Below, one piece after another: positions 4,336 to 39,699 of a stretch of DNA of 64,000 bases. The stretch is from Vitrella brassicaformis CCMP3155 (taxonomy: Eukaryota > Protista > Chromerida), in contig CDMY01000262.1 of assembly GCA_001179505.1 (NCBI GenBank), positions 80,595 through 144,594 of the forward strand. The letters run 5' to 3'. Below the pieces are notes generated by a model. The model had not been told where the DNA came from and did not search any database. It worked only from the letters and a program-made list of their open reading frames with translations. The position numbers and the translations under genes are program-made. Numbering within the stretch: the first letter of the stretch is position 1; every line of letters begins with the position of its first letter.

Positions 4336-7117
4336 GCTGGTTGCCGCTGTGTCGCTCGTGTGCCGCCTGGGGGGCATCCCACTGTCCATCACGCTGCCCT
4401 TTGGCCTGGGGGCCGTGCTTGCCTGGTCATCTTGGTCACTTGCTGGGGTGATCCTCGGCACATCCCTGGCCGTCATGGCCATATCCATCGTCACAGGGTG
4501 AGCAAAGGAAGCCACAAGAGGTGCTGTTGGAGTGCGTATGCCCGGTTGTTTCCCCTCAGAGCGGACCCCATCCCCGAGATCAGTCCCTATCCGATTATCG
4601 GAGTGATTCCCGACTTCGCCAAGAGTCCCCTGGCAGTGCTCAAGAGGGCGTCGAGGGAGTACAGGGATGTGTTTCGGCTCAACCTGGGTGGCATGCGCAT
4701 CACATTCTTCACGGGCACCGACGGCCTGGACGTCTTCTTCAAGAGTAGAGACACACAACTCAGCCAAAAGGAGGTCTACAAGGTAACTAGACGAAGCGAG
4801 AACAGTGGCCATCGTGTGCATGAGGCTTCATGTGTGTGTTGTGTGTGGCCATCCATCCATCCCATCAGCTGACGGTGCCCGTGTTTGGCAAGGGTGTGGT
4901 GTACGACGCCGATCTGGATGTGCGTCTGGAGCAGTTCCACATGCTGACGACGGGGCTGTCTGAGCGACACATGAAGAGATACGTCGGATACATGGTCAAG
5001 GTATCCATCCACACCGAGGGATGGCACCATCACACACACACACAGCCTCATGTTGTGATGCGGCTGTCCGTGTGTGTCGGATATAGGAGTGTGAGATGTA
5101 CTTCAGCCGCTGGGGCGACTCGGGGGAGGTCGACATCGGCGAGGCGTTCGCGGAGCTCATCATACTCACCGTACACATACCAGCCACCACACATGGATGG
5201 AGGGAAGCATTATGTAGCGGCACGGCCTCTCGCTTTGTCTCCTTCTGCAGGCGAGTCGCTGTCTGATGGGTCGTGAGGTGCGCGAGCAGATGTTCGAGGA
5301 GGTGGCCAAGCTCTACCACGCTCTCGAGGAGGGCATCACGCACATCGGCTTCATCGCACCCTGGCTGCCCATACCCAAACACCTCAAGAGGGACAAGGCG
5401 CGCAGGCAACTCGTCGACCTCTACTCTAGGGTGGGCAAGCAATGCAGCCAGACAACACAATGAATGCGCTTGACCCGATGTGTGTGCAGGTGTTGCGGGC
5501 TCGGCGTGCAGCAATGGCTGAGAAGGATGCGTCGCTGTCGACCGAGACGCAGTCGACCACACAATCGCAGGAGGACAAGACAGACGATGAGGACCTGGAG
5601 CACGACGTCATTGAGGTGAGTGGGCAAGACAGACGGAGGGGATCACCTCACGGGCAGGCACTTTTGGTGGCGTGTGTATGTGTGCAGGTGTTGCTCAAGA
5701 GTCGTTACCGTGACGGCCGTGCCCTGACCGATGATGAGCTGTGCGGCATGCTGATTGTCCTCCTCTTCGCCGGGCAGCACACCTCATCTGTTACATCACT
5801 TTGGCTGGTCGGCCACACACACACACCCCCCCCCCCCANNNNNNNNNNNNNNNNNNNNNNNNNNNNNNNNNNNNNNNNNNNNNNNNNNNNNNNNNNNNNN
5901 NNNNNNNNNNNNNNNNNNNNNNNNNNNNNNNNNNNNNNNNNNNNNNNNNNNNNNNNNNNNNNNNNNNNNNNNNNNNNNNNNNNNNNNNNNNNNNNNNNNN
6001 NNNNNNNNNNNNNNNNNNNNNNNNNNNNNNNNNNNNNNNNNNNNNNNNNNNNNNNNNNNNNNNNNNNNNNNNNNNNNNNNNNNNNNNNNNNNNNNNNNNN
6101 NNNNNNNNNNNNNNNNNNNNNNNNNNNNNNNNNNNNNNCCCCCCCCCCCCAACACACACACAGATATCGATGTGTGGTCATAGCTCTTGCTGTCCCTGTC
6201 TGGCTGGGTGTGTGTCAGAGCGTGAACCTGTTGTCAAATGCGTCTCGTGTGATGCCCAGCCTGGTGAAGGAGCAGGAAAGTGCCGGGCCGGTTGACTTCG
6301 ACATGATCAGCAAATCGCTCCCAAAACTCACGGCAGCCATCATCGGTAACCACAGACACACACATGCACGCGCATTGGCTCGCTCTCACCCCCACGAACG
6401 CCCCTATGTGTGTGTCGTTCGACCAGAGAGTCTGCGTATGTACCCGCCGCTGTTCTTTCTGTTCCGCTACGTCAAGGAGCCTCTGGTGTTCAAGGGCCGG
6501 GTCATCCCCACCAACAGCACGGTGGCCATGTCGCCAGCCGAGACGGGCAGGAACCCCGACATATTCGACCAGCCCGACTTCTACCAACCTGCACGATGGC
6601 TCACGGTGCGCACACTCAGACAGGCAGGAAGGGCAAGGGACCTCATCCTTGTCTGTCTGTGTGTGTGTGTGTTCAGAATGACTGGGACGAGTGGCGCAAG
6701 GTGTCCAAGTATGTGTCGTTCGGCTCTGGCGGCCACACGTGCATGGGGCGGCGGTTCGCACTCCTCCAGATCCGCACCATCTTCTCTCTGCTCATGAGGA
6801 ACTTCGTACTCGAGCAAGCGTATGCACACCCACACACGCCCGACCAGGACAAAAGACACAGCAACCACCATCCTCCCTCTCTCTCTGTCTGTGTCGTGTT
6901 GTCGCCTTGCCGTTGCTGTGCCAGTTCGCCGGTGCCAGCAGTGGACGAGACGGCCATGGTGGCCGGCCCCAAGACGCCCTTCCGCGTTAAGTACAGGAAG
7001 ATCCACACCGGGACGGCAGCACTCATGGGCATCGACGGACAGTGCGGCGACCTCATGGACGCGTGGGGATTCGACGAGAAGAGCCAGAAGGTCGCTGATG
7101 CGATGCGGGCGTTTTGA
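4336..7117 (+). CDS. CYP51: Sterol 14-alpha-demethylase (CYP51) with preceding hydrophobic anchor; probably the C-terminal half of the fusion
   Basis: [21 protein letters not shown]-helix [11 protein letters not shown]-helix ESLRMYPP, heme motif [10 protein letters not shown] (Cys at 6740-6742), stop at 7115-7117. Confidence 0.95.
5839..6138. other. Assembly gap (300 N) inside a CYP51 intron
   Basis: Both flanks end in poly-C/(CA)n runs; coding exons on both sides join sensibly. Confidence 0.95.
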
Positions 7118-22159: not shown

Positions 22160-25100
22160 ATGTCAAGTGTGCAGCACCCTGGCCTCTACTTCTTCGGACT
22201 GGTGAGCCAAGAGAGACACTCAGAGAGATACGTACGTGGAGAGCTGCAGACAGACGTTCTGTTGTCTGGTGGTGTGTTGTGTGTTGGCCCTTCCTCGTTT
22301 TCTTTGCAGGCGCTGTTTGCGTCGATATGGTTGCTGATGGCCCTCATCGGCGGCCAGTGGTCATGCATTATGGAGGGCAAGTGCGGGGCGTCCCCCGGGA
22401 TGAGCCAGGCAAAGGCCGTGCCAGTGATCACCACACCGACCATCCCAGATGACCGCAACTCGACGGCCACGGCCCAAGTGCAGTCGGCCCTCGATGACGC
22501 CAAGGACTTCTTCGCCATCGTGCAGATCTTGTGGATCGTTTCGCTGGCGCCGTTCGTTGTCTTTCTGCTGCTGGGGATGATTAACCCGCGGGGCTTCGAG
22601 TGGCGGCGAAAGGCCAAGACCTTGGCCAATGAGGACAGCGAGGCGCGGCGAGTGCATCTGCAAAGCGATGGGACCAAGATCAGCTACCGAGTGGTGACTA
22701 GAGGCACCAATCCATCGCTTGTGGCCGATGTGGCCAAGCGGAACATCCCGCTGCTGAGAGAAAAGGCCACGATGCCCTTCATCTACGAGGTCGCCACCGA
22801 CAGGTGAGGTGCGCTCACACACAGAGAGAGGAGGCAGGCCAGCCACAGAGAGAGAGCCAATGCACTGCCATGGGGGCGTCAGTCACCTGTCTGTCGGTGT
22901 CCTATTATTACTTCAGGCCTCTGAATTTGGCCTGCCATTTGTCTGAGTTGGGTATCGGTGCGGGGGGCCACGACGCCGAGGGCGGCCTGGCGGTCAATGA
23001 GATCGTGGTGCCCGACTCGTATAAGCCCCCAGGCGGCGCTGTGTGGAAGGCGCGGGCCCTCAACTTCGCCAATGAGCCCAACCTCTGACGGTGAGAGAGT
23101 CAGTGAGGATTGCCGGGACGCCATGGCCTCTCACTCATTGCTGTGCTGTGCTGTGCTGTGGTGCTGTGTGTTCAGGAAGGGGACATTGTGGTGCATTTGG
23201 ACGAGGAGACCCTCCTGACGCACAGCTGTGTGGCGGGCATCGAAGAGTTCGTCAGGGCCGATGCGTCGCGAGTGGGCAGCGGCACCATTGCCTACGGGCA
23301 GGACGTCATCGTCAACCCATGGCTGACCATGGCCGACAGCCTCCGAGTCACCGACGACTACTGCAAAATGCGACTCTTCTTCTCCTCCTTCAAACCCCTC
23401 ATCGGCATGAAAGGTGACAGCAGAGCAGACACACACACGGCTTCTCAGCTGACTGACCCCCTGCCCTGCACACCACACACACGGATCTGTCTGTCTGTCT
23501 GCTTTTTGGTCCACAGGCTCGTTTGTGGTCTGCCCCGTGGCCGTCGAGCGGCGCGTGACGTGGGACCACGGCCGCGACGGGTCGATCACCGAGGACACGA
23601 CCTTTGCCCTCAAGGCGGTGGGCGAGGGCGTGCGGTTCGGGTGGGTCAAGGGCGTCATGCGGGAGAAGAGCCCCTTCGGCATCGTTGACTTCATGAAGCA
23701 GCGGCGGCGGTGGTTCCAGGGGCTCTGGCGGGACGCCGTCAAGAAGGAGCTCAAGCTGCACACACGACTGAGTAAGCACAGCACACAGACAAGGATGAAG
23801 AGAGAGAGAGAGCTCATTCCTCTCTCTCTGTGTTTGGTTCGTTCAGTGTTNNNNNNNNNNNNNNNNNNNNNNNNNNNNNNNNNNNNNNNNNNNNNNNNNN
23901 NNNNNNNNNNNNNNNNNNNNNNNNNNNNNNNNNNNNNNNNNNNNNNNNNNNNNNNNNNNNNNNNNNNNNNNNNNNNNNNNNNNNNNNNNNNNNNNNNNNN
24001 NNNNNNNNNNNNNNNNNNNNNNNNNNNNNNNNNNNNNNNNNNNNNNNNNNNNNNNNNNNNNNNNNNNNNNNNNNNNNNNNNNNNNNNNNNNNNNNNNNNN
24101 NNNNNNNNNNNNNNNNNNNNNNNNNNNNNNNNNNNNNNNNNNNNNNNNNNACGGTGAGAGAGTCAGTGAGGATTGCCGGGACGCCATGGCCTCTCACTCA
24201 TTGCTGTGCTGTGCTGTGCTGTGGTGCTGTGTGTTCAGGAAGGGGACATTGTGGTGCATTTGGACGAGGAGACCCTCCTGACGCACAGCTGTGTGGCGGG
24301 CATCGAAGAGTTCGTCAGGGCCGATGCGTCGCGAGTGGGCAGCGGCACCATTGCCTACGGGCAGGACGTCATCGTCAACCCATGGCTGACCATGGCCGAC
24401 AGCCTCCGAGTCACCGACGACTACTGCAAAATGCGACTCTTCTTCTCCTCCTTCAAACCCCTCATCGGCATGAAAGGTGACAGCAGAGCAGACACACACA
24501 CGGCTTCTCAGCTGACTGACCCCCTGCCCTGCACACCACACACACGGATCTGTCTGTCTGTCTGCTTTTTGGTCCACAGGCTCGTTTGTGGTCTGCCCCG
24601 TGGCCGTCGAGCGGCGCGTGACGTGGGACCACGGCCGCGACGGGTCGATCACCGAGGACACGACCTTTGCCCTCAAGGCGGTGGGCGAGGGCGTGCGGTT
24701 CGGGTGGGTCAAGGGCGTCATGCGGGAGAAGAGCCCCTTCGGCATCGTTGACTTCATGAAGCAGCGGCGGCGGTGGTTCCAGGGGCTCTGGCGGGACGCC
24801 GTCAAGAAGGAGCTCAAGCTGCACACACGACTGAGTAAGCACAGCACACAGACACACAGACAAAGATAAGGAGGAAAGAGCTCATTCCTCTCTCTCTGTG
24901 TTTGGTTCGTTCAGTGTTGGGTTACTGTCTGGCGATGTGGTCGTTCATTCCGCTGTGGAATCTGCTGATGCTGCTCGAGCTCACCTGCGAGCATGGGCTG
25001 GGCCACCCCATCCCCTACCCCGCGACGCCCCTCCTCATGGCCATCAAGACCACCTGGATGGTCAGCCCAGCCAGCACACACACACAAGTGCTCAGGCAGG

Positions 25101-35064: not shown

Positions 35065-36756
35065 ATGTACCCTTTGTATCGGTTGACAAAGAATCGGTTG
35101 GCTCTCGTGAGGTATAGACAGACAGACAGACAGACAGACAGAGGGGGTCGGTGGATAAGGCGGGGTACCCGAGCCATTGCCAGTAGATGTTTGTATGCAC
35201 AGACAGACAGAGAGAGAAGGGCGGGCCAGGCGAACGGGGAGTGAGTGAACGGCAGGACGGCAGCCAGCTAACTCGGTAAGTCAGTCGGTCGGTATGGACA
35301 AAGTCGGTCAGGGAAGGCTCAACACGACTGGCCGCCGGCATTCCGTCCACAACGTCACACACACGCACACACACACACACCCCAAACAAAAAGACTGATC
35401 GTGGCAAAAAGGGCCGGCAGGCGACAAACCAACAGGTGGATGGGATGAACACAAAACTTGTCGGCCGACTCACCTGCGCCCCACTCACCGCAGCGGCGCC
35501 CTCAGCTACATCTTGCCCCACGGCTGGGCTGCCTAAGCTGTCTCCCTCTCTCCCCCCTCTCCCTCGTCCCTTCACACAAACGCACAGCTATACACTGACT
35601 GACACATGGCCCAGCTGCCAGCAGACACACACACTCAGCCAGCTGAGCCTCAGCCTCTCTCATTTCCTTACTTATCGCTGCCCTCCCCGTTGCTGGTCGA
35701 CCCCTCCCNNNNNNNNNNNNNNNNNNNNNNNNNNNNNNNNNNNNNNNNNNNNNNNNNNNNNNNNNNNNNNNNNNNNNNNNNNNNNNNNNNNNNNNNNNNN
35801 NNNNNNNNNNNNNNNNNNNNNNNNNNNNNNNNNNNNNNNNNNNNNNNNNNNNNNNNNNNNNNNNNNNNNNNNNNNNNNNNNNNNNNNNNNNNNNNNNNNN
35901 NNNNNNNNNNNNNNNNNNNNNNNNNNNNNNNNNNNNNNNNNNNNNNNNNNNNNNNNNNNNNNNNNNNNNNNNNNNNNNNNNNNNNNNNNNNNNNNNNNNN
36001 NNNNNNNNACTGGCCGCCGATGAGGGCCATCAGCAACCATATCGACGCAAACAGCGCCTGCAAACAAAGCGAGAGCCAACACAACACACCACCAGACAAC
36101 AGAATGTCTGTCTGCAGCTCTCCACGTACGTATCTCTCTGTGTGTCTCTCTTGGCTCACCAGCCCGAAGAAGTAGAGGCCGGGGTGCTGCACGCCTGACA
36201 TGTCTGCCGTTCGTCCGAGTCAGCGGCTCACGCGAAGACAGCTGTGATGAGAAGGGAGGGACTCAGCAGCACAGCAGCAGGCTCTCTCGCTGACAAAGGG
36301 TATCGATCTCTGGCTGACACAAGCAGGCTTCGGGAGAACGGGCTGCAGATGGACTGAAGCTGCTGTGCTGTGTGGTGGATGGCGGCTGCTGTGGTGCGCT
36401 GTGTGGCGGGGGGTCACGACAGCCGTGCCGCTCCGCTCTGTCTTCTCACTCTCTGTTTTGTCTTCGCGAGGAGAGATGCGCGAGCTGCAACGTTTCACGG
36501 CGGCGCGAGGGCACGCTCTTTTGCGAAGGTGGCCGCGGCTCTTGTGCTTCGGTCGTCGGTCGGCTGCCTTCTGTTGGGCTCACAGATCAGTGCTTTCCGG
36601 CTCGTTTTGCTGCGAGCTAAGAAAAATCGCTTGACCGTTGGCACAGCGTACGAGAGGCACACCGAAGCAGAGGTCTGCACTCTCTCGGTTGGATGGTCTG
36701 ATGCGGGGGGCCCGGCGATGTGCGACCCCTACCCCCCGCAATGCTCAAGAGGACCA
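35065..36756 (-). repeat. Copy B of the inverted duplication, with the central ~3 kb collapsed into the 300-N gap 35709-36008
   Basis: The left flank is the 3' end of the egh gene and its downstream region; the right flank is the 5' end and promoter. Both are reverse-complemented relative to copy A. Confidence 0.9.
35668..36201 (-). CDS. egh: Egghead-like mannosyltransferase copy 2; only the first exons and last codons are visible
   Basis: MSGVQHPGLYFFG...ALFASIWLLMALIGGQ before the gap and EGSTSNGEGSDK* after it, matching both ends of copy 1 (MSSVQHPG...). Confidence 0.75.
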   Translation of the reverse strand: MSGVQHPGLYFFGLVSQERHTERYVRGELQTDILLSGGVLCWLSLCLQALFASIWLLMALIGGQXXXXXXXXXXXXXXXXXXXXXXXXXXXXXXXXXXXXXXXXXXXXXXXXXXXXXXXXXXXXXXXXXXXXXXXXXXXXXXXXXXXXXXXXXXXXXXXXXXXXXEGSTSNGEGSDK

Positions 36757-39699
36757 GACGACGGAAGCAACACTCCGGCATCCTCCTCCTCTTCCTCCAC
36801 GCCATCATGGCCTCACTCGTCCTCACCAGCGCGTCCTTCCTGCAGGACCAGCGCACCAGACGCGATGACAAAAGGCACCAGCACCAACAGCAGAAGCAGA
36901 AGCAGAAGCAGCAACCACAGGAGAAGAACCCCGCCCGGCAGCGGCTCAGGGACATACGGTCGTCGGCAGCGCACTGGCTGCACAAGAAGGGGGCGCCGAA
37001 GCGTCTGCCGCCACTGGCATGGTGCTCCGACAGGCGGATGACGGCGGCGGTGCCCGTGGGGTATGATCCAGCGCAGATCGGCAAGCGGAGGGGCGGGTTC
37101 GCCAACTCGCCCACCATCAACGATGAGATCGTGAGCTGGAATGACACCGAGTGGCGGCCTGACGGGAAGGGCAACGGCACTGAGGACTGCCGGGCGGTGT
37201 ATGCCTTCAACTTTTTCGGTCTCAAGGCCGACGCGCTGATGGCGTCGGCGGGGTACGATGAGTGCGGCACCACCGTGACGCGCACGGCCCTCTACACCTA
37301 CTACACCAACGTGCTGCGCCTCAACGGGCCCAACAACAATGTCATCGTCACGTGCGCATGCCCTGTCGACCTTCCCACAAACACCTCGCTCGACGACCCA
37401 GTGCCCAGTTGTCAGTCGACGGCCAAGTGGGAGCATGAGTCGACATCCAGACGCGCCTTTCATGGCCGCAACGTCACGAACCCGATGGTGGGTGCGGTGG
37501 GGCGGGGCCACCTGCTGTCGAGCGAGTGGATGGTGGGAGAGAACATGACCATGGCCGTGCAAAAACGAGACGAGTGAGTCAGTCAGGAAGGGGGGAGAGG
37601 GTATTGGCATGGTATCCATGTTGTGAATGTGTGTGTTTGTGTTGTGTGTCAGGGAGCTGGTTTTCGAGTCGGTGATCGAGGGAGAGGCAGCCCATCCGTG
37701 GCCGATGGTGTGTGTGGCCCTCTGCAACGACACCAGTGGCCCAGCCGACCGGTCCAGTGACCGCTGCTCCCGCACCCTAATGCTTGAGGGCTGCCCCGTC
37801 GACGCCGACAATCGCTACAACTTCACGGTCCTCAACCAGACCGCCCACCGCATCGTCTTCTCCTTCTCCCGTGACGCCCTCCCCTCCCCCGCCCCCCCGT
37901 ATAGCGACGCCGTCAGCGTCCGCTGCATGATGGCCGCCTTCCCCCAGCCCCCCTCCAGCAAGGCCATGTGCGAGCTGCAGAAGACATACGCAGCCAAGAG
38001 GCGACGAAGGAAGCTTCAAGAGGACGATCCGGCAACAACAACAACAACAACAACGGCAGCGACAGAGGAGAGGAAGGAAGAGTTCCTTGCCAACGGGACC
38101 AGGAAATGGGACGACCTCGCTGCAGATGCGGAGGGCACGGTGGAGGGTCACGTGTTGAACCCCCTCAACTTCCCTCTCACCGGGCTGCTGGGTGTGCCTG
38201 GTGCCCAGTTCCCCCGCTTCACGCCCTCGGCCGATCGGGTGGCCGTGGAGGTGGCCAACGAGATCGTCTACGACAACTGGCAGGTCAACTGGGGACGCGA
38301 CTTCGCCGAGGCGGAGACGGCCGTCCAAGTGGGCAATGACCTGGCCTTCGTGGGCATCGGTATCGGGGTCGACCAGCGGGAGAGTGCCGTCAACGTGGGC
38401 TACGGCAAGACCACCGTGTCGTATTCGGCGCAAGAGACCGACCTCGAGGCAGGTGTCGGCGTGGCAATCGGGTCATACGGTGTGCGTGTCGATAACGACA
38501 TCGACGATCGGGCCGTGGCCGTCGAGGCGGTCGCCAGAGGCGTCGAATCGGGGACCAACGTCGACATACTCGATCGGTACATAGCTGACACGCATACATC
38601 GAAGACAGACAGACTTAAGCGTGAGTGGCTTGTGGCTTCGTGTTGCAGGGATTACGGTCAGCGCGTCAAGGTCCGCAACTTCGAGTTTGCGGCGCGTCAC
38701 GACTTCTTCGACGTGCAAGACCCCAGCACCTTCGACGACGACGAGCTGGCGACGGAGGTGTTCGTGGGCTACAAGACCACTGCCGTGGCCGTCGGCACCG
38801 ACGTCGACGACACCGAATACGGCGTCAGTGTGGGCACACTTGGGTACCAATTCTCAATCATTCGCGACTTCGACGAGCGGGAAACGGACTTCCAAGGTCA
38901 GCTAAGCGAACGGACGACAGGTTCCTGCCTCCACTCGGCGACTGTGGGCTCTGGTTCTCTATCTATCTGTAGGCAACTGGGGCGATGGCTACCAGCTTGT
39001 CTTGAATGGTTGGAAGGGCCGATGGCCGTGATAGATACCGCCTGAACTTGTCGTGAGTGTGCATTAATTATGTCTGTCTGTGGCGGTTCCTGCAGGTGAC
39101 TTCCCCGACTTCGCCGACACTGAGGTGTTCGGTCAGGTGGGGTTCGGCAAGCTGGGTGGCGTGTACGTGCAGATCGGTGCGGGTGTGGGTGGGGACGGCA
39201 TTCCACAGGGGTCGGCAGAAGTCGAGACCAGGGACATCGGCATTGGATTCGACTTCATCGATGACGGGGGCAGGCGCCTCTTTCTGCTATCAATCACCAT
39301 CGGTGGGTGAGACAGACAGAAATGGATTGGGGAGCACTGGATGAGTGTGGCTTTGTCTTCTGTATGTGTGGTTGATTGGTGCAGGCAAGTTCACGTATGT
39401 GTGGGAAAGGTAAGGACAGACAAGCCACGTGGATTCGCTCGCTGGCCGACGCTCACTGTCCTGCTGTTTCCTTGTCCTTCTTCCCCCCGTGTATGTGTCC
39501 GCGCGATCTTAGCATCGTTGTGCCAGGTAACGCTGCACGTGAGCCATGTCGAGCGTACAAGCGTCCTTATGTCTCTCTCTCTCCCTCTCTGCCTGTGTGT
39601 GTATGTGCAGACAATCTGGAGCTCCCCCTTATACTGGGTTCGGATTTGGGCCTTACCTCCGCCGAGTCGCAGAGCACCACTTTGTCACGCCCCCAATGA
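36741..39699 (+). CDS. Secreted protein with a zona pellucida (ZP-N/ZP-C)-like module, polybasic furin-type site and beta-strand-rich C-terminal domain
   Basis: Hydrophobic leader ILLLFLHAIMASLVLTSA; WCSDRRMTAAVP, DECGTT, YYTNVL, VIVTCACPVD, LMLEGCPVD, RIVFSF, VSVRC, then KRRRRK. The gene itself is well supported (long exons, GT-AG introns); the ZP call rests on motif recognition. Confidence 0.7.

Follow-up and report, generated by a model that had tools for sequence, protein, structure and literature searches.

The 64,000-nucleotide stretch of Vitrella brassicaformis CCMP3155 DNA analyzed here (contig CDMY01000262.1; hereafter the window, whose numbering is used throughout) carries on its plus strand a gene of which the product contains a divergent but complete zona pellucida (ZP) module, ZP-N followed by ZP-C, homologous to the ZP modules of animals. 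We read the whole protein as a secreted, N-glycosylated precursor in which the module is followed by a polybasic site, a Thr-rich linker and a C-terminal beta domain, and from which the module would be released by cleavage to assemble into a matrix. We put the probability of this reading at about 0.75. What is new is the occurrence of a known module in an unexpected lineage, joined to a C-terminal partner that has no precedent and deviating from the known proteins in its anchor and in its external hydrophobic patch (EHP).

The fold of the module was read from an AlphaFold2 model of the full-length paralogue P0004, built with a family alignment of 39 rows that included the translations of the window exons. 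P0004 and the window protein share 51% identity over 739 residues, with all 12 cysteines conserved and no gaps at the cysteines. The model predicts two beta-sandwich domains, ZP-N and then ZP-C, in one module, and its predicted local distance difference test (pLDDT) values are 80-95 in the module, below 50 in the linker after the RRRR motif and above 90 in the C-terminal domain. When the model was compared with the PDB by Foldseek, ranks 1-17 were all ZP-module structures (E 2.8e-7 to 1.5e-4, probability 1.00, 265-289 aligned columns), namely uromodulin filaments and precursor, ZP3, ZP3/ZP1, ZPD and endoglin. Against the AFDB Swiss-Prot set, ZP-module proteins (DMBT1, uromodulin, GP2, ZP3, beta-tectorin, ZPLD1, endoglin and CUZD1) accounted for 29 of the 30 top matches, which cover P0004 residues from about 84 to 397, that is, from just before the first conserved cysteine (C1) to just past the RRRR site. 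VIA-align superimposed the ZP-C domains of UMOD, GP2, ZPD, ZP3, ZP2 and betaglycan at Z 8-9.6 with a root-mean-square deviation (rmsd) of 3.1-3.7 A over 111-132 residues. Thus the comparison by AlphaFold and Foldseek that an earlier note on this DNA, made from the letters alone, had proposed as a check placed ZP modules at the top of the lists for both domains.

The sequence itself carries the cysteines of such a module in the expected order. The peptides on which the earlier note based its proposal are all found in the plus strand translation: in ZP-N, WCSDRRMTAAVP (C95), EDCRAVYAF (C150), DECGTT (C175), YYTNVL and VIVTCACPVDL (C205/C207), and in ZP-C, MVGENMTMAV, MVCVALC (C298/C302), LMLEGCPVD (C325), RIVFSFSRDAL, VSVRCMM (C369) and AMCE (C384). 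In ZP-C, C298, C325 (in the LEGCPVD motif), C369 and C384 are C5, C6, C7 and C8, respectively, and an additional pair, C302/C316, is variable within the family. C1-C4, an extra C4' and C5-C8 are almost invariant family-wide. Between C1 and C2 (37083-37190, residues 115-150) the window ZP-N is also longer by about 21 residues (SPTINDEIVSWNDTEWRPDGKGNG, two sequons among them), an insertion that the Vitrella paralogues P0002-P0004 do not have.

A profile made from the ZP region of 31 family members (A5) was searched against 177,635 distinct PDB sequences and gave five matches at E <10, of which four were ZP chains. These top four, ZPD (28yj, E 6.1e-4), uromodulin (E 0.004 and 0.039) and ZP3 (E 0.27), give a significant but modest signal, and their alignments are as follows: at C3 the family consensus ...eeCGtqv...yYsNvlrv lies on its uromodulin counterpart; nvvvtCac at C4 lies on VVIVECHYP of ZP3; and kCea (C5), LivnGCPvs (C6), iriqCem (C7) and eqCs (C8) lie on NCYA, IIQDRCPHT, VYLHCEV and PTCS, respectively. 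In ZP-N, C2 is in register as well, so that C2-C4 align with ZPD, UMOD and ZP3. The module with its canonical cysteines and GCP motif, as it had been proposed, is supported both by the fold of P0004 and by the top PDB matches of the A5 profile. Among the 39 family members, sub-threshold Pfam matches were to ZP-N in two and to ZP-C in one, and these two families were the most frequent and had the lowest E values among the sub-threshold Pfam families. UniRef/UniProt tags the paralogues P0003 and P0004 as 'ZP domain-containing protein', a label that was assigned automatically and is the sole prior trace of a ZP assignment.

Several results weigh against a ZP assignment. The Pfam ZP-N family (PF23344) matched exon 1 at E 0.004-0.012 with 16.4-17.9 bits, below the cutoff of 24.7, so that the profile search suggested earlier did detect ZP-N below threshold but did not reach the gathering score; neither the window exons nor the family members gave a match above the gathering threshold of PF23344 or of Zona_pellucida/ZP-C (PF00100). 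Searches of the PDB with phmmer using exon 1 and P0010 gave chance matches only (DUF4183, EF-Tu), and the narrow profiles A1 (whole protein) and A2 (7 sequences, ZP region) found nothing there at E <=10. The whole-module TM-scores were low (0.12-0.35), because the two domains are oriented differently and the query is long (713 residues), and the fold was read from the model of a paralogue, not from the window protein. An ESM Atlas feature search of exon 1 was uninformative (scores <=0.56). One could suppose that two generic cysteine-rich Ig-like beta sandwiches, without shared ancestry, were rendered ZP-like by AlphaFold; the sub-threshold Pfam scores, a best family-profile E of only 6e-4 and global TM-scores below 0.5 would fit such convergence, which the earlier note had listed among the possible origins. 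We consider it very unlikely, because C3-C8 and the motifs around them align with those of uromodulin and ZP3: the profile puts C3-C4, C5-C8, CG(T/S) and the GCP motif on their uromodulin/ZP3 counterparts, eight conserved cysteines stand at canonical positions, and the Foldseek lists contain almost purely ZP modules, not other Ig-like folds, with both domains matched in the right order.

The distribution of the family and the structure of the gene bear on another explanation, that animal DNA contaminated the assembly or that the gene was acquired from an animal very recently. In favour of an animal source, the canonical ZP module is otherwise described as a feature, indeed a synapomorphy, of metazoans, choanoflagellates having no more than incomplete ZP-like domains (PMC13361971). 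We found no paper that reports ZP domains from alveolates, and ZP is not mentioned in the chromerid genome paper. However, when the ZP-region profile was searched exhaustively with HMMER against 1.84 billion representative proteins (E <=1e-3), 30 relatives were retrieved; all those with source names are from Apicomplexa or chrompodellids, and no animal ZP protein was among the 30. The named sources are Vitrella, Piridium, Rhytidocystis, Cardiosporidium, Selenidium, Ancora, Blabericola, Gregarina niphandrodes and several Cryptosporidium species, so the family, which the earlier note had suggested looking for in related proteomes, spans chromerids, Piridium, gregarines, Rhytidocystis, nephromycids and Cryptosporidium, with relatives in at least 11 apicomplexan/chrompodellid species and at least six paralogues in Vitrella. 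A component found across the apicomplexan/chrompodellid lineage is therefore old, and neither a contaminant nor a recent acquisition from an animal.

The locus itself agrees with this. The composition is uniform across the 64-kb window, and the coding sequence, assembled from open reading frames, GT-AG sites and the alignment with paralogues, runs from 36741 to 39696 with the stop codon included, encoding 790 residues in eight exons separated by seven introns, all GT-AG and 72-103 nt each. Introns 2, 3 and 5 appear as spliced joints in contigs of two RNA runs (X1/X2), intron 4, at the exon 4/5 junction, is backed by one loose end in the RNA contigs, and the DNA runs of the organism carry the unspliced locus. 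The spliced junctions mean that the gene is real, transcribed and spliced; the locus is a genuine, expressed alveolate gene. That the gene is a non-animal one with introns, as claimed from the sequence at the outset, is thus supported. It is present in both DNA and RNA runs of the organism, and these points together with the distribution of the family effectively refute contamination or very recent transfer.

Intron 1 and a micro-exon lie outside the RNA contig coverage and were placed by homology alone. Exon 1 would run into an in-frame stop after ...QKRDE; removal of intron 1 lets the frame continue as ELVFES..., gap-free against the paralogues. The micro-exon is required both for the reading frame and for the paralogue motif WES-EVVP-D/EGL (WES-xVVP-D). 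The gene is longer than first described: the interval 36741-38013 given before does contain the listed peptides and an intron, but it ends about halfway through the gene, of which the remainder has six more introns and codes for another 390 residues. The coordinates of all parts are collected in Table 1.

Table 1 Features of the ZP-module gene of V. brassicaformis in window coordinates
Feature	Position	Strand	Residues	Remarks
Exons 1-8	36741-37573, 37653-38576, 38649-38896, 38973-39008, 39096-39302, 39385-39409, 39513-39526, 39611-39696	+
Intron 1	37574-37652	+		79 nt, GTGAGT...CAG, within the ZP-C coding region
Micro-exon	39513-39526	+		14 nt, CATCGTTGTGCCAG; encodes (S)IVVP(D); AG acceptor, GT donor
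N-terminal leader	36741..36845	+		basic stretch, then hydrophobic core GILLLFLHAIMASLVLTSA (residues 13-31)
Low-complexity spacer	36846..37001	+	36-87	Q/K/R-rich, defined by composition
ZP-N domain	37023..37361	+		C1 = C95, C2 = C150, C3 = C175, C4 = C205, extra Cys 207
Interdomain region and ZP-C domain	37410..37989	+	224-390	split by intron 1
KRRRRK	37996..38013	+	393-398	begins 9 residues after C8; candidate furin/kexin-type site
Linker	38014..38229	+	399-470	poly-Thr run, acidic stretch, semi-conserved VEGH...PL..LLG patch
C-terminal domain	38230..39648	+	471-775	exons 2-8, no Cys

The nearest database relatives of the window protein are six Vitrella paralogues at 48-55% identity, and a word-indexed search likewise returned V. 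brassicaformis proteins, at 47-50%. The window protein itself was not found in the protein database, in which those paralogues were the closest entries, and no tandem paralogue lies within the window. The assembly has three gaps of exactly 300 N each (5839-6138, 23851-24150 and 35709-36008); the third lies some 730 bp before the start codon and leaves the promoter and the 5' untranslated region incompletely assembled, which could explain why the gene product is missing from the protein databases.

The protein begins, as noted before, with a secretion-type leader, starting at the ATG at 36741. Its residues 13-31 are the sole segment in the whole protein with a 19-residue Kyte-Doolittle hydropathy above 1.6, so that the leader is predicted to be a signal peptide or a signal anchor, and the paralogues P0003, P0004 and P0056 likewise start with hydrophobic leaders. 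The spacer that follows is not alignable among the paralogues. The many N-x-S/T sequons reported earlier number nine, eight of which lie upstream of the RRRR site. Outside the leader, no 19-residue stretch exceeds a hydropathy of 1.38, and the C-terminus is polar; the protein has neither a transmembrane helix nor a tail of the glycosylphosphatidylinositol (GPI) type.

The KRRRRK run is found exactly where it had been placed, after ZP-C. An RRRR-type motif occurs 6-9 residues after C8 in P0001-P0004, P0055 and P0056, that is, in six of the seven Vitrella paralogues retrieved. The poly-Thr run immediately after it, encoded by an (ACA)n microsatellite (38025-38068), likely forms an O-glycosylated, mucin-like spacer, and its length could differ between strains. 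Further downstream, 45-65 residues from the site, is a semi-conserved hydrophobic patch, PL..LLG; in the P0004 model it is not a strand.

The part of the protein after the linker, which the earlier note did not cover, is a domain of about 300 residues that AlphaFold2 models as 24 strands of 8-10 residues each, arranged in 12 beta hairpins that recur about every 22 residues (pLDDT 87.8 and predicted TM-score 0.75 when the domain was modelled alone). In the model the hairpins have two-residue turns along one edge and short acidic loops along the other, and every strand presents hydrophobic side chains (V, I, A, Y, F) on one face, the other being polar or rich in Gly. This amphipathic character of the predicted sheet suggests an association with a membrane, a lipid or another sheet. 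The hairpin repeat has the consensus x-V-x-V-G-x-x-G-x-x-V-x-V-D-x-D-x-D-D-R/T-E, which matches no Pfam family, and the acidic loops on the one edge (DxDD, FDER, VDDT) may make it a cation-binding edge.

This domain has no close structural relative. It had no match in Pfam, and Foldseek found nothing in the PDB at E <=1e-3 (TM <=0.33). VIA returned the apoB-100 beta-belt (9coo) at Z up to 15 with an rmsd of about 20 A and large outer-membrane barrels at Z 9-11, those at Z 9-10 with an rmsd of 10-18 A, along with OspA, CPAP G-box and MORN, and a shape search of the atlas gave TamB, ushers and porins at TM 0.38-0.46. The apoB-100 belt, TamB, the usher PapC, the VDAC/OEP37 porins and OspA do share with the domain a long meander of antiparallel strands that are short and amphipathic, but no match reaches TM 0.5, the rmsd values are 5-20 A, and no Pfam family is in common. 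We therefore did not assign the domain to outer-membrane barrels, OspA, CPAP G-box, MORN, the apoB belt or TamB. Among AFDB clusters, the fold is shared only by two members of the family, a Gregarina 'transmembrane protein' (TM 0.91) and a Cryptosporidium 'D15 domain' protein (TM 0.84). The latter label, from UniRef, was also set aside, for Pfam did not reproduce it on P0054.

In 23 retrieved proteins the ZP module is joined by the C-terminal domain (E 1e-46 to 1e-184), which occupies the place that the transmembrane or GPI anchor has in animal proteins. A second branch of the family consists of large proteins of Cryptosporidium, Cardiosporidium, Selenidium, Rhytidocystis and Vitrella with PAN/apple domains upstream of the ZP-like module. 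This branch does not have the C-terminal beta domain, and the window protein does not have a PAN domain. The PAN-carrying relatives P0018, P0020, P0022, P0027, P0028, P0037 and P0046, of 1100-2300 residues, come from Rhytidocystis, Selenidium, Cryptosporidium and Cardiosporidium. In animals, PAN/apple and ZP domains are combined in cuticlin- and NompA-type architectures, which belong to proteins of the cuticle and of sensory matrices. The second apicomplexan branch recalls this arrangement. In P0046 (Cryptosporidium canis, 2338 residues) the PAN and ZP-like protein is fused to a complete TRAPP subunit domain (residues 2173-2325, Pfam E 6e-39); the fusion is probably an annotation merger of neighbouring genes, which explains the short TRAPP proteins in its 90% cluster. 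The UniRef names 'Subtilisin' and 'Bacterial repeat domain' on long relatives were not reproduced by Pfam and are unreliable.

Among known systems, the polymerizing animal proteins uromodulin, GP2 and ZPD (6tqk, 6zya, 4wrn, 8xc5, 28yj) gave the best Foldseek, VIA and profile matches. Like them, the window protein has ZP-N before ZP-C, C3, C4 and C5-C8 in register, CG(T/S) after C3, an x-G/R-C-P-x-D motif at C6, a polybasic site shortly after C8, a predicted signal peptide and N-glycan sequons. Unlike them, it belongs to an alveolate alga, shares only 11-18% identity and stays below the Pfam thresholds, adds cysteine pairs (a C207/C224-type pair and the variable 302/316 pair), and has, instead of a recognizable EHP strand and a GPI or transmembrane anchor, a 300-residue amphipathic beta domain after the site. 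ZP3 (type I; 3nk3/3nk4, 8bqu) matches in the fold of both domains, and the C3...C4 segment of the family aligns with it by profile; the four core cysteines of the window ZP-C appear compatible with the type I pattern of ZP3. However, ZP3 has a C-terminal transmembrane helix, an EHP and a ZP-C subdomain, the last of which is not present in the window protein.

From these features we propose the following course of events. The precursor would enter the endoplasmic reticulum, where its disulfides would form and glycosylation would take place. The C-terminal beta domain would replace the anchor and the propeptide of animal ZP proteins, retaining the precursor on a membrane or a lipid surface, or blocking assembly in some other way. 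In the Vitrella-type paralogues a kexin/furin-like subtilase would then cut at RRRR and free the ZP module, and the freed module would assemble into an extracellular matrix, which may be the wall of a cell, a cyst or a sporangium, or a surface coat.

Some observations weaken this scheme, and with it the polymer of a wall, sporangium or gamete coat that the earlier note had proposed. The polybasic motif is not at the position after C8 in P0006 or in the gregarine, Rhytidocystis and Cryptosporidium members. In the P0004 model no EHP strand follows RRRR, the region being helical or disordered with pLDDT <50. In addition, the C-terminal domain is the best-conserved part of the protein (51% identity to Rhytidocystis, against 24% for the ZP region), unlike a disposable propeptide. 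These points would be accommodated if the ZP module is genuine but forms no filaments, so that the protein acts as a surface-tethered adhesin or co-receptor, with the beta domain as a permanent anchor in a membrane or wall and RRRR as a lineage-specific shedding site or an incidental motif. Endoglin and betaglycan (5hzv, 4ajv, 8dc0), whose ZP fold matches the family model, do not polymerize and show that the module can serve in a tethered receptor and need not be a subunit of a filament, and endoglin is among our structural matches; they differ in being vertebrate TGF-beta co-receptors anchored by a transmembrane helix, without a polybasic site at the same place. Such a non-polymerizing protein is favoured by the absence of the site from most other members, the most frequent architecture outside Vitrella being a ZP module and beta domain with no polybasic site beside them, and by the high conservation of the beta domain. 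On the other hand, the best structural and sequence matches are polymerizing ZP proteins (uromodulin, ZPD, ZP3, GP2), and in six paralogues RRRR has been kept at 6-9 residues after C8, which speaks for selection at this place. We therefore regard a non-polymerizing adhesin or receptor as possible but rather unlikely, and retain the reading of a precursor from which cleavage would release a matrix-forming module.

The presence of a complete eight-cysteine ZP-N/ZP-C module in chromerids, gregarines and Cryptosporidium shifts the search for its origin beyond Holozoa; the candidates are ancient inheritance with loss and transfer between animals and early alveolate associates. In a wider and more tentative view, which we hold as doubtful, the ZP module would not be an animal invention: the family would have been present in the apicomplexan-chrompodellid ancestor, through older inheritance or through exchange with early animals, and would there have been coupled to a 24-strand sheet, as a novel anchor or assembly domain, to make an extracellular polymer, activated by cleavage, of cyst, oocyst or sporangium walls. 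The conserved amphipathic beta domain may represent a new way to tether or regulate a secreted polymer. The family is of interest for the structural biology of ZP proteins and fertilization and for apicomplexan cell-wall biology alike, as it supplies a candidate structural protein for the poorly understood walls and coats of apicomplexans, including a member in Cryptosporidium, a parasite of humans and animals.

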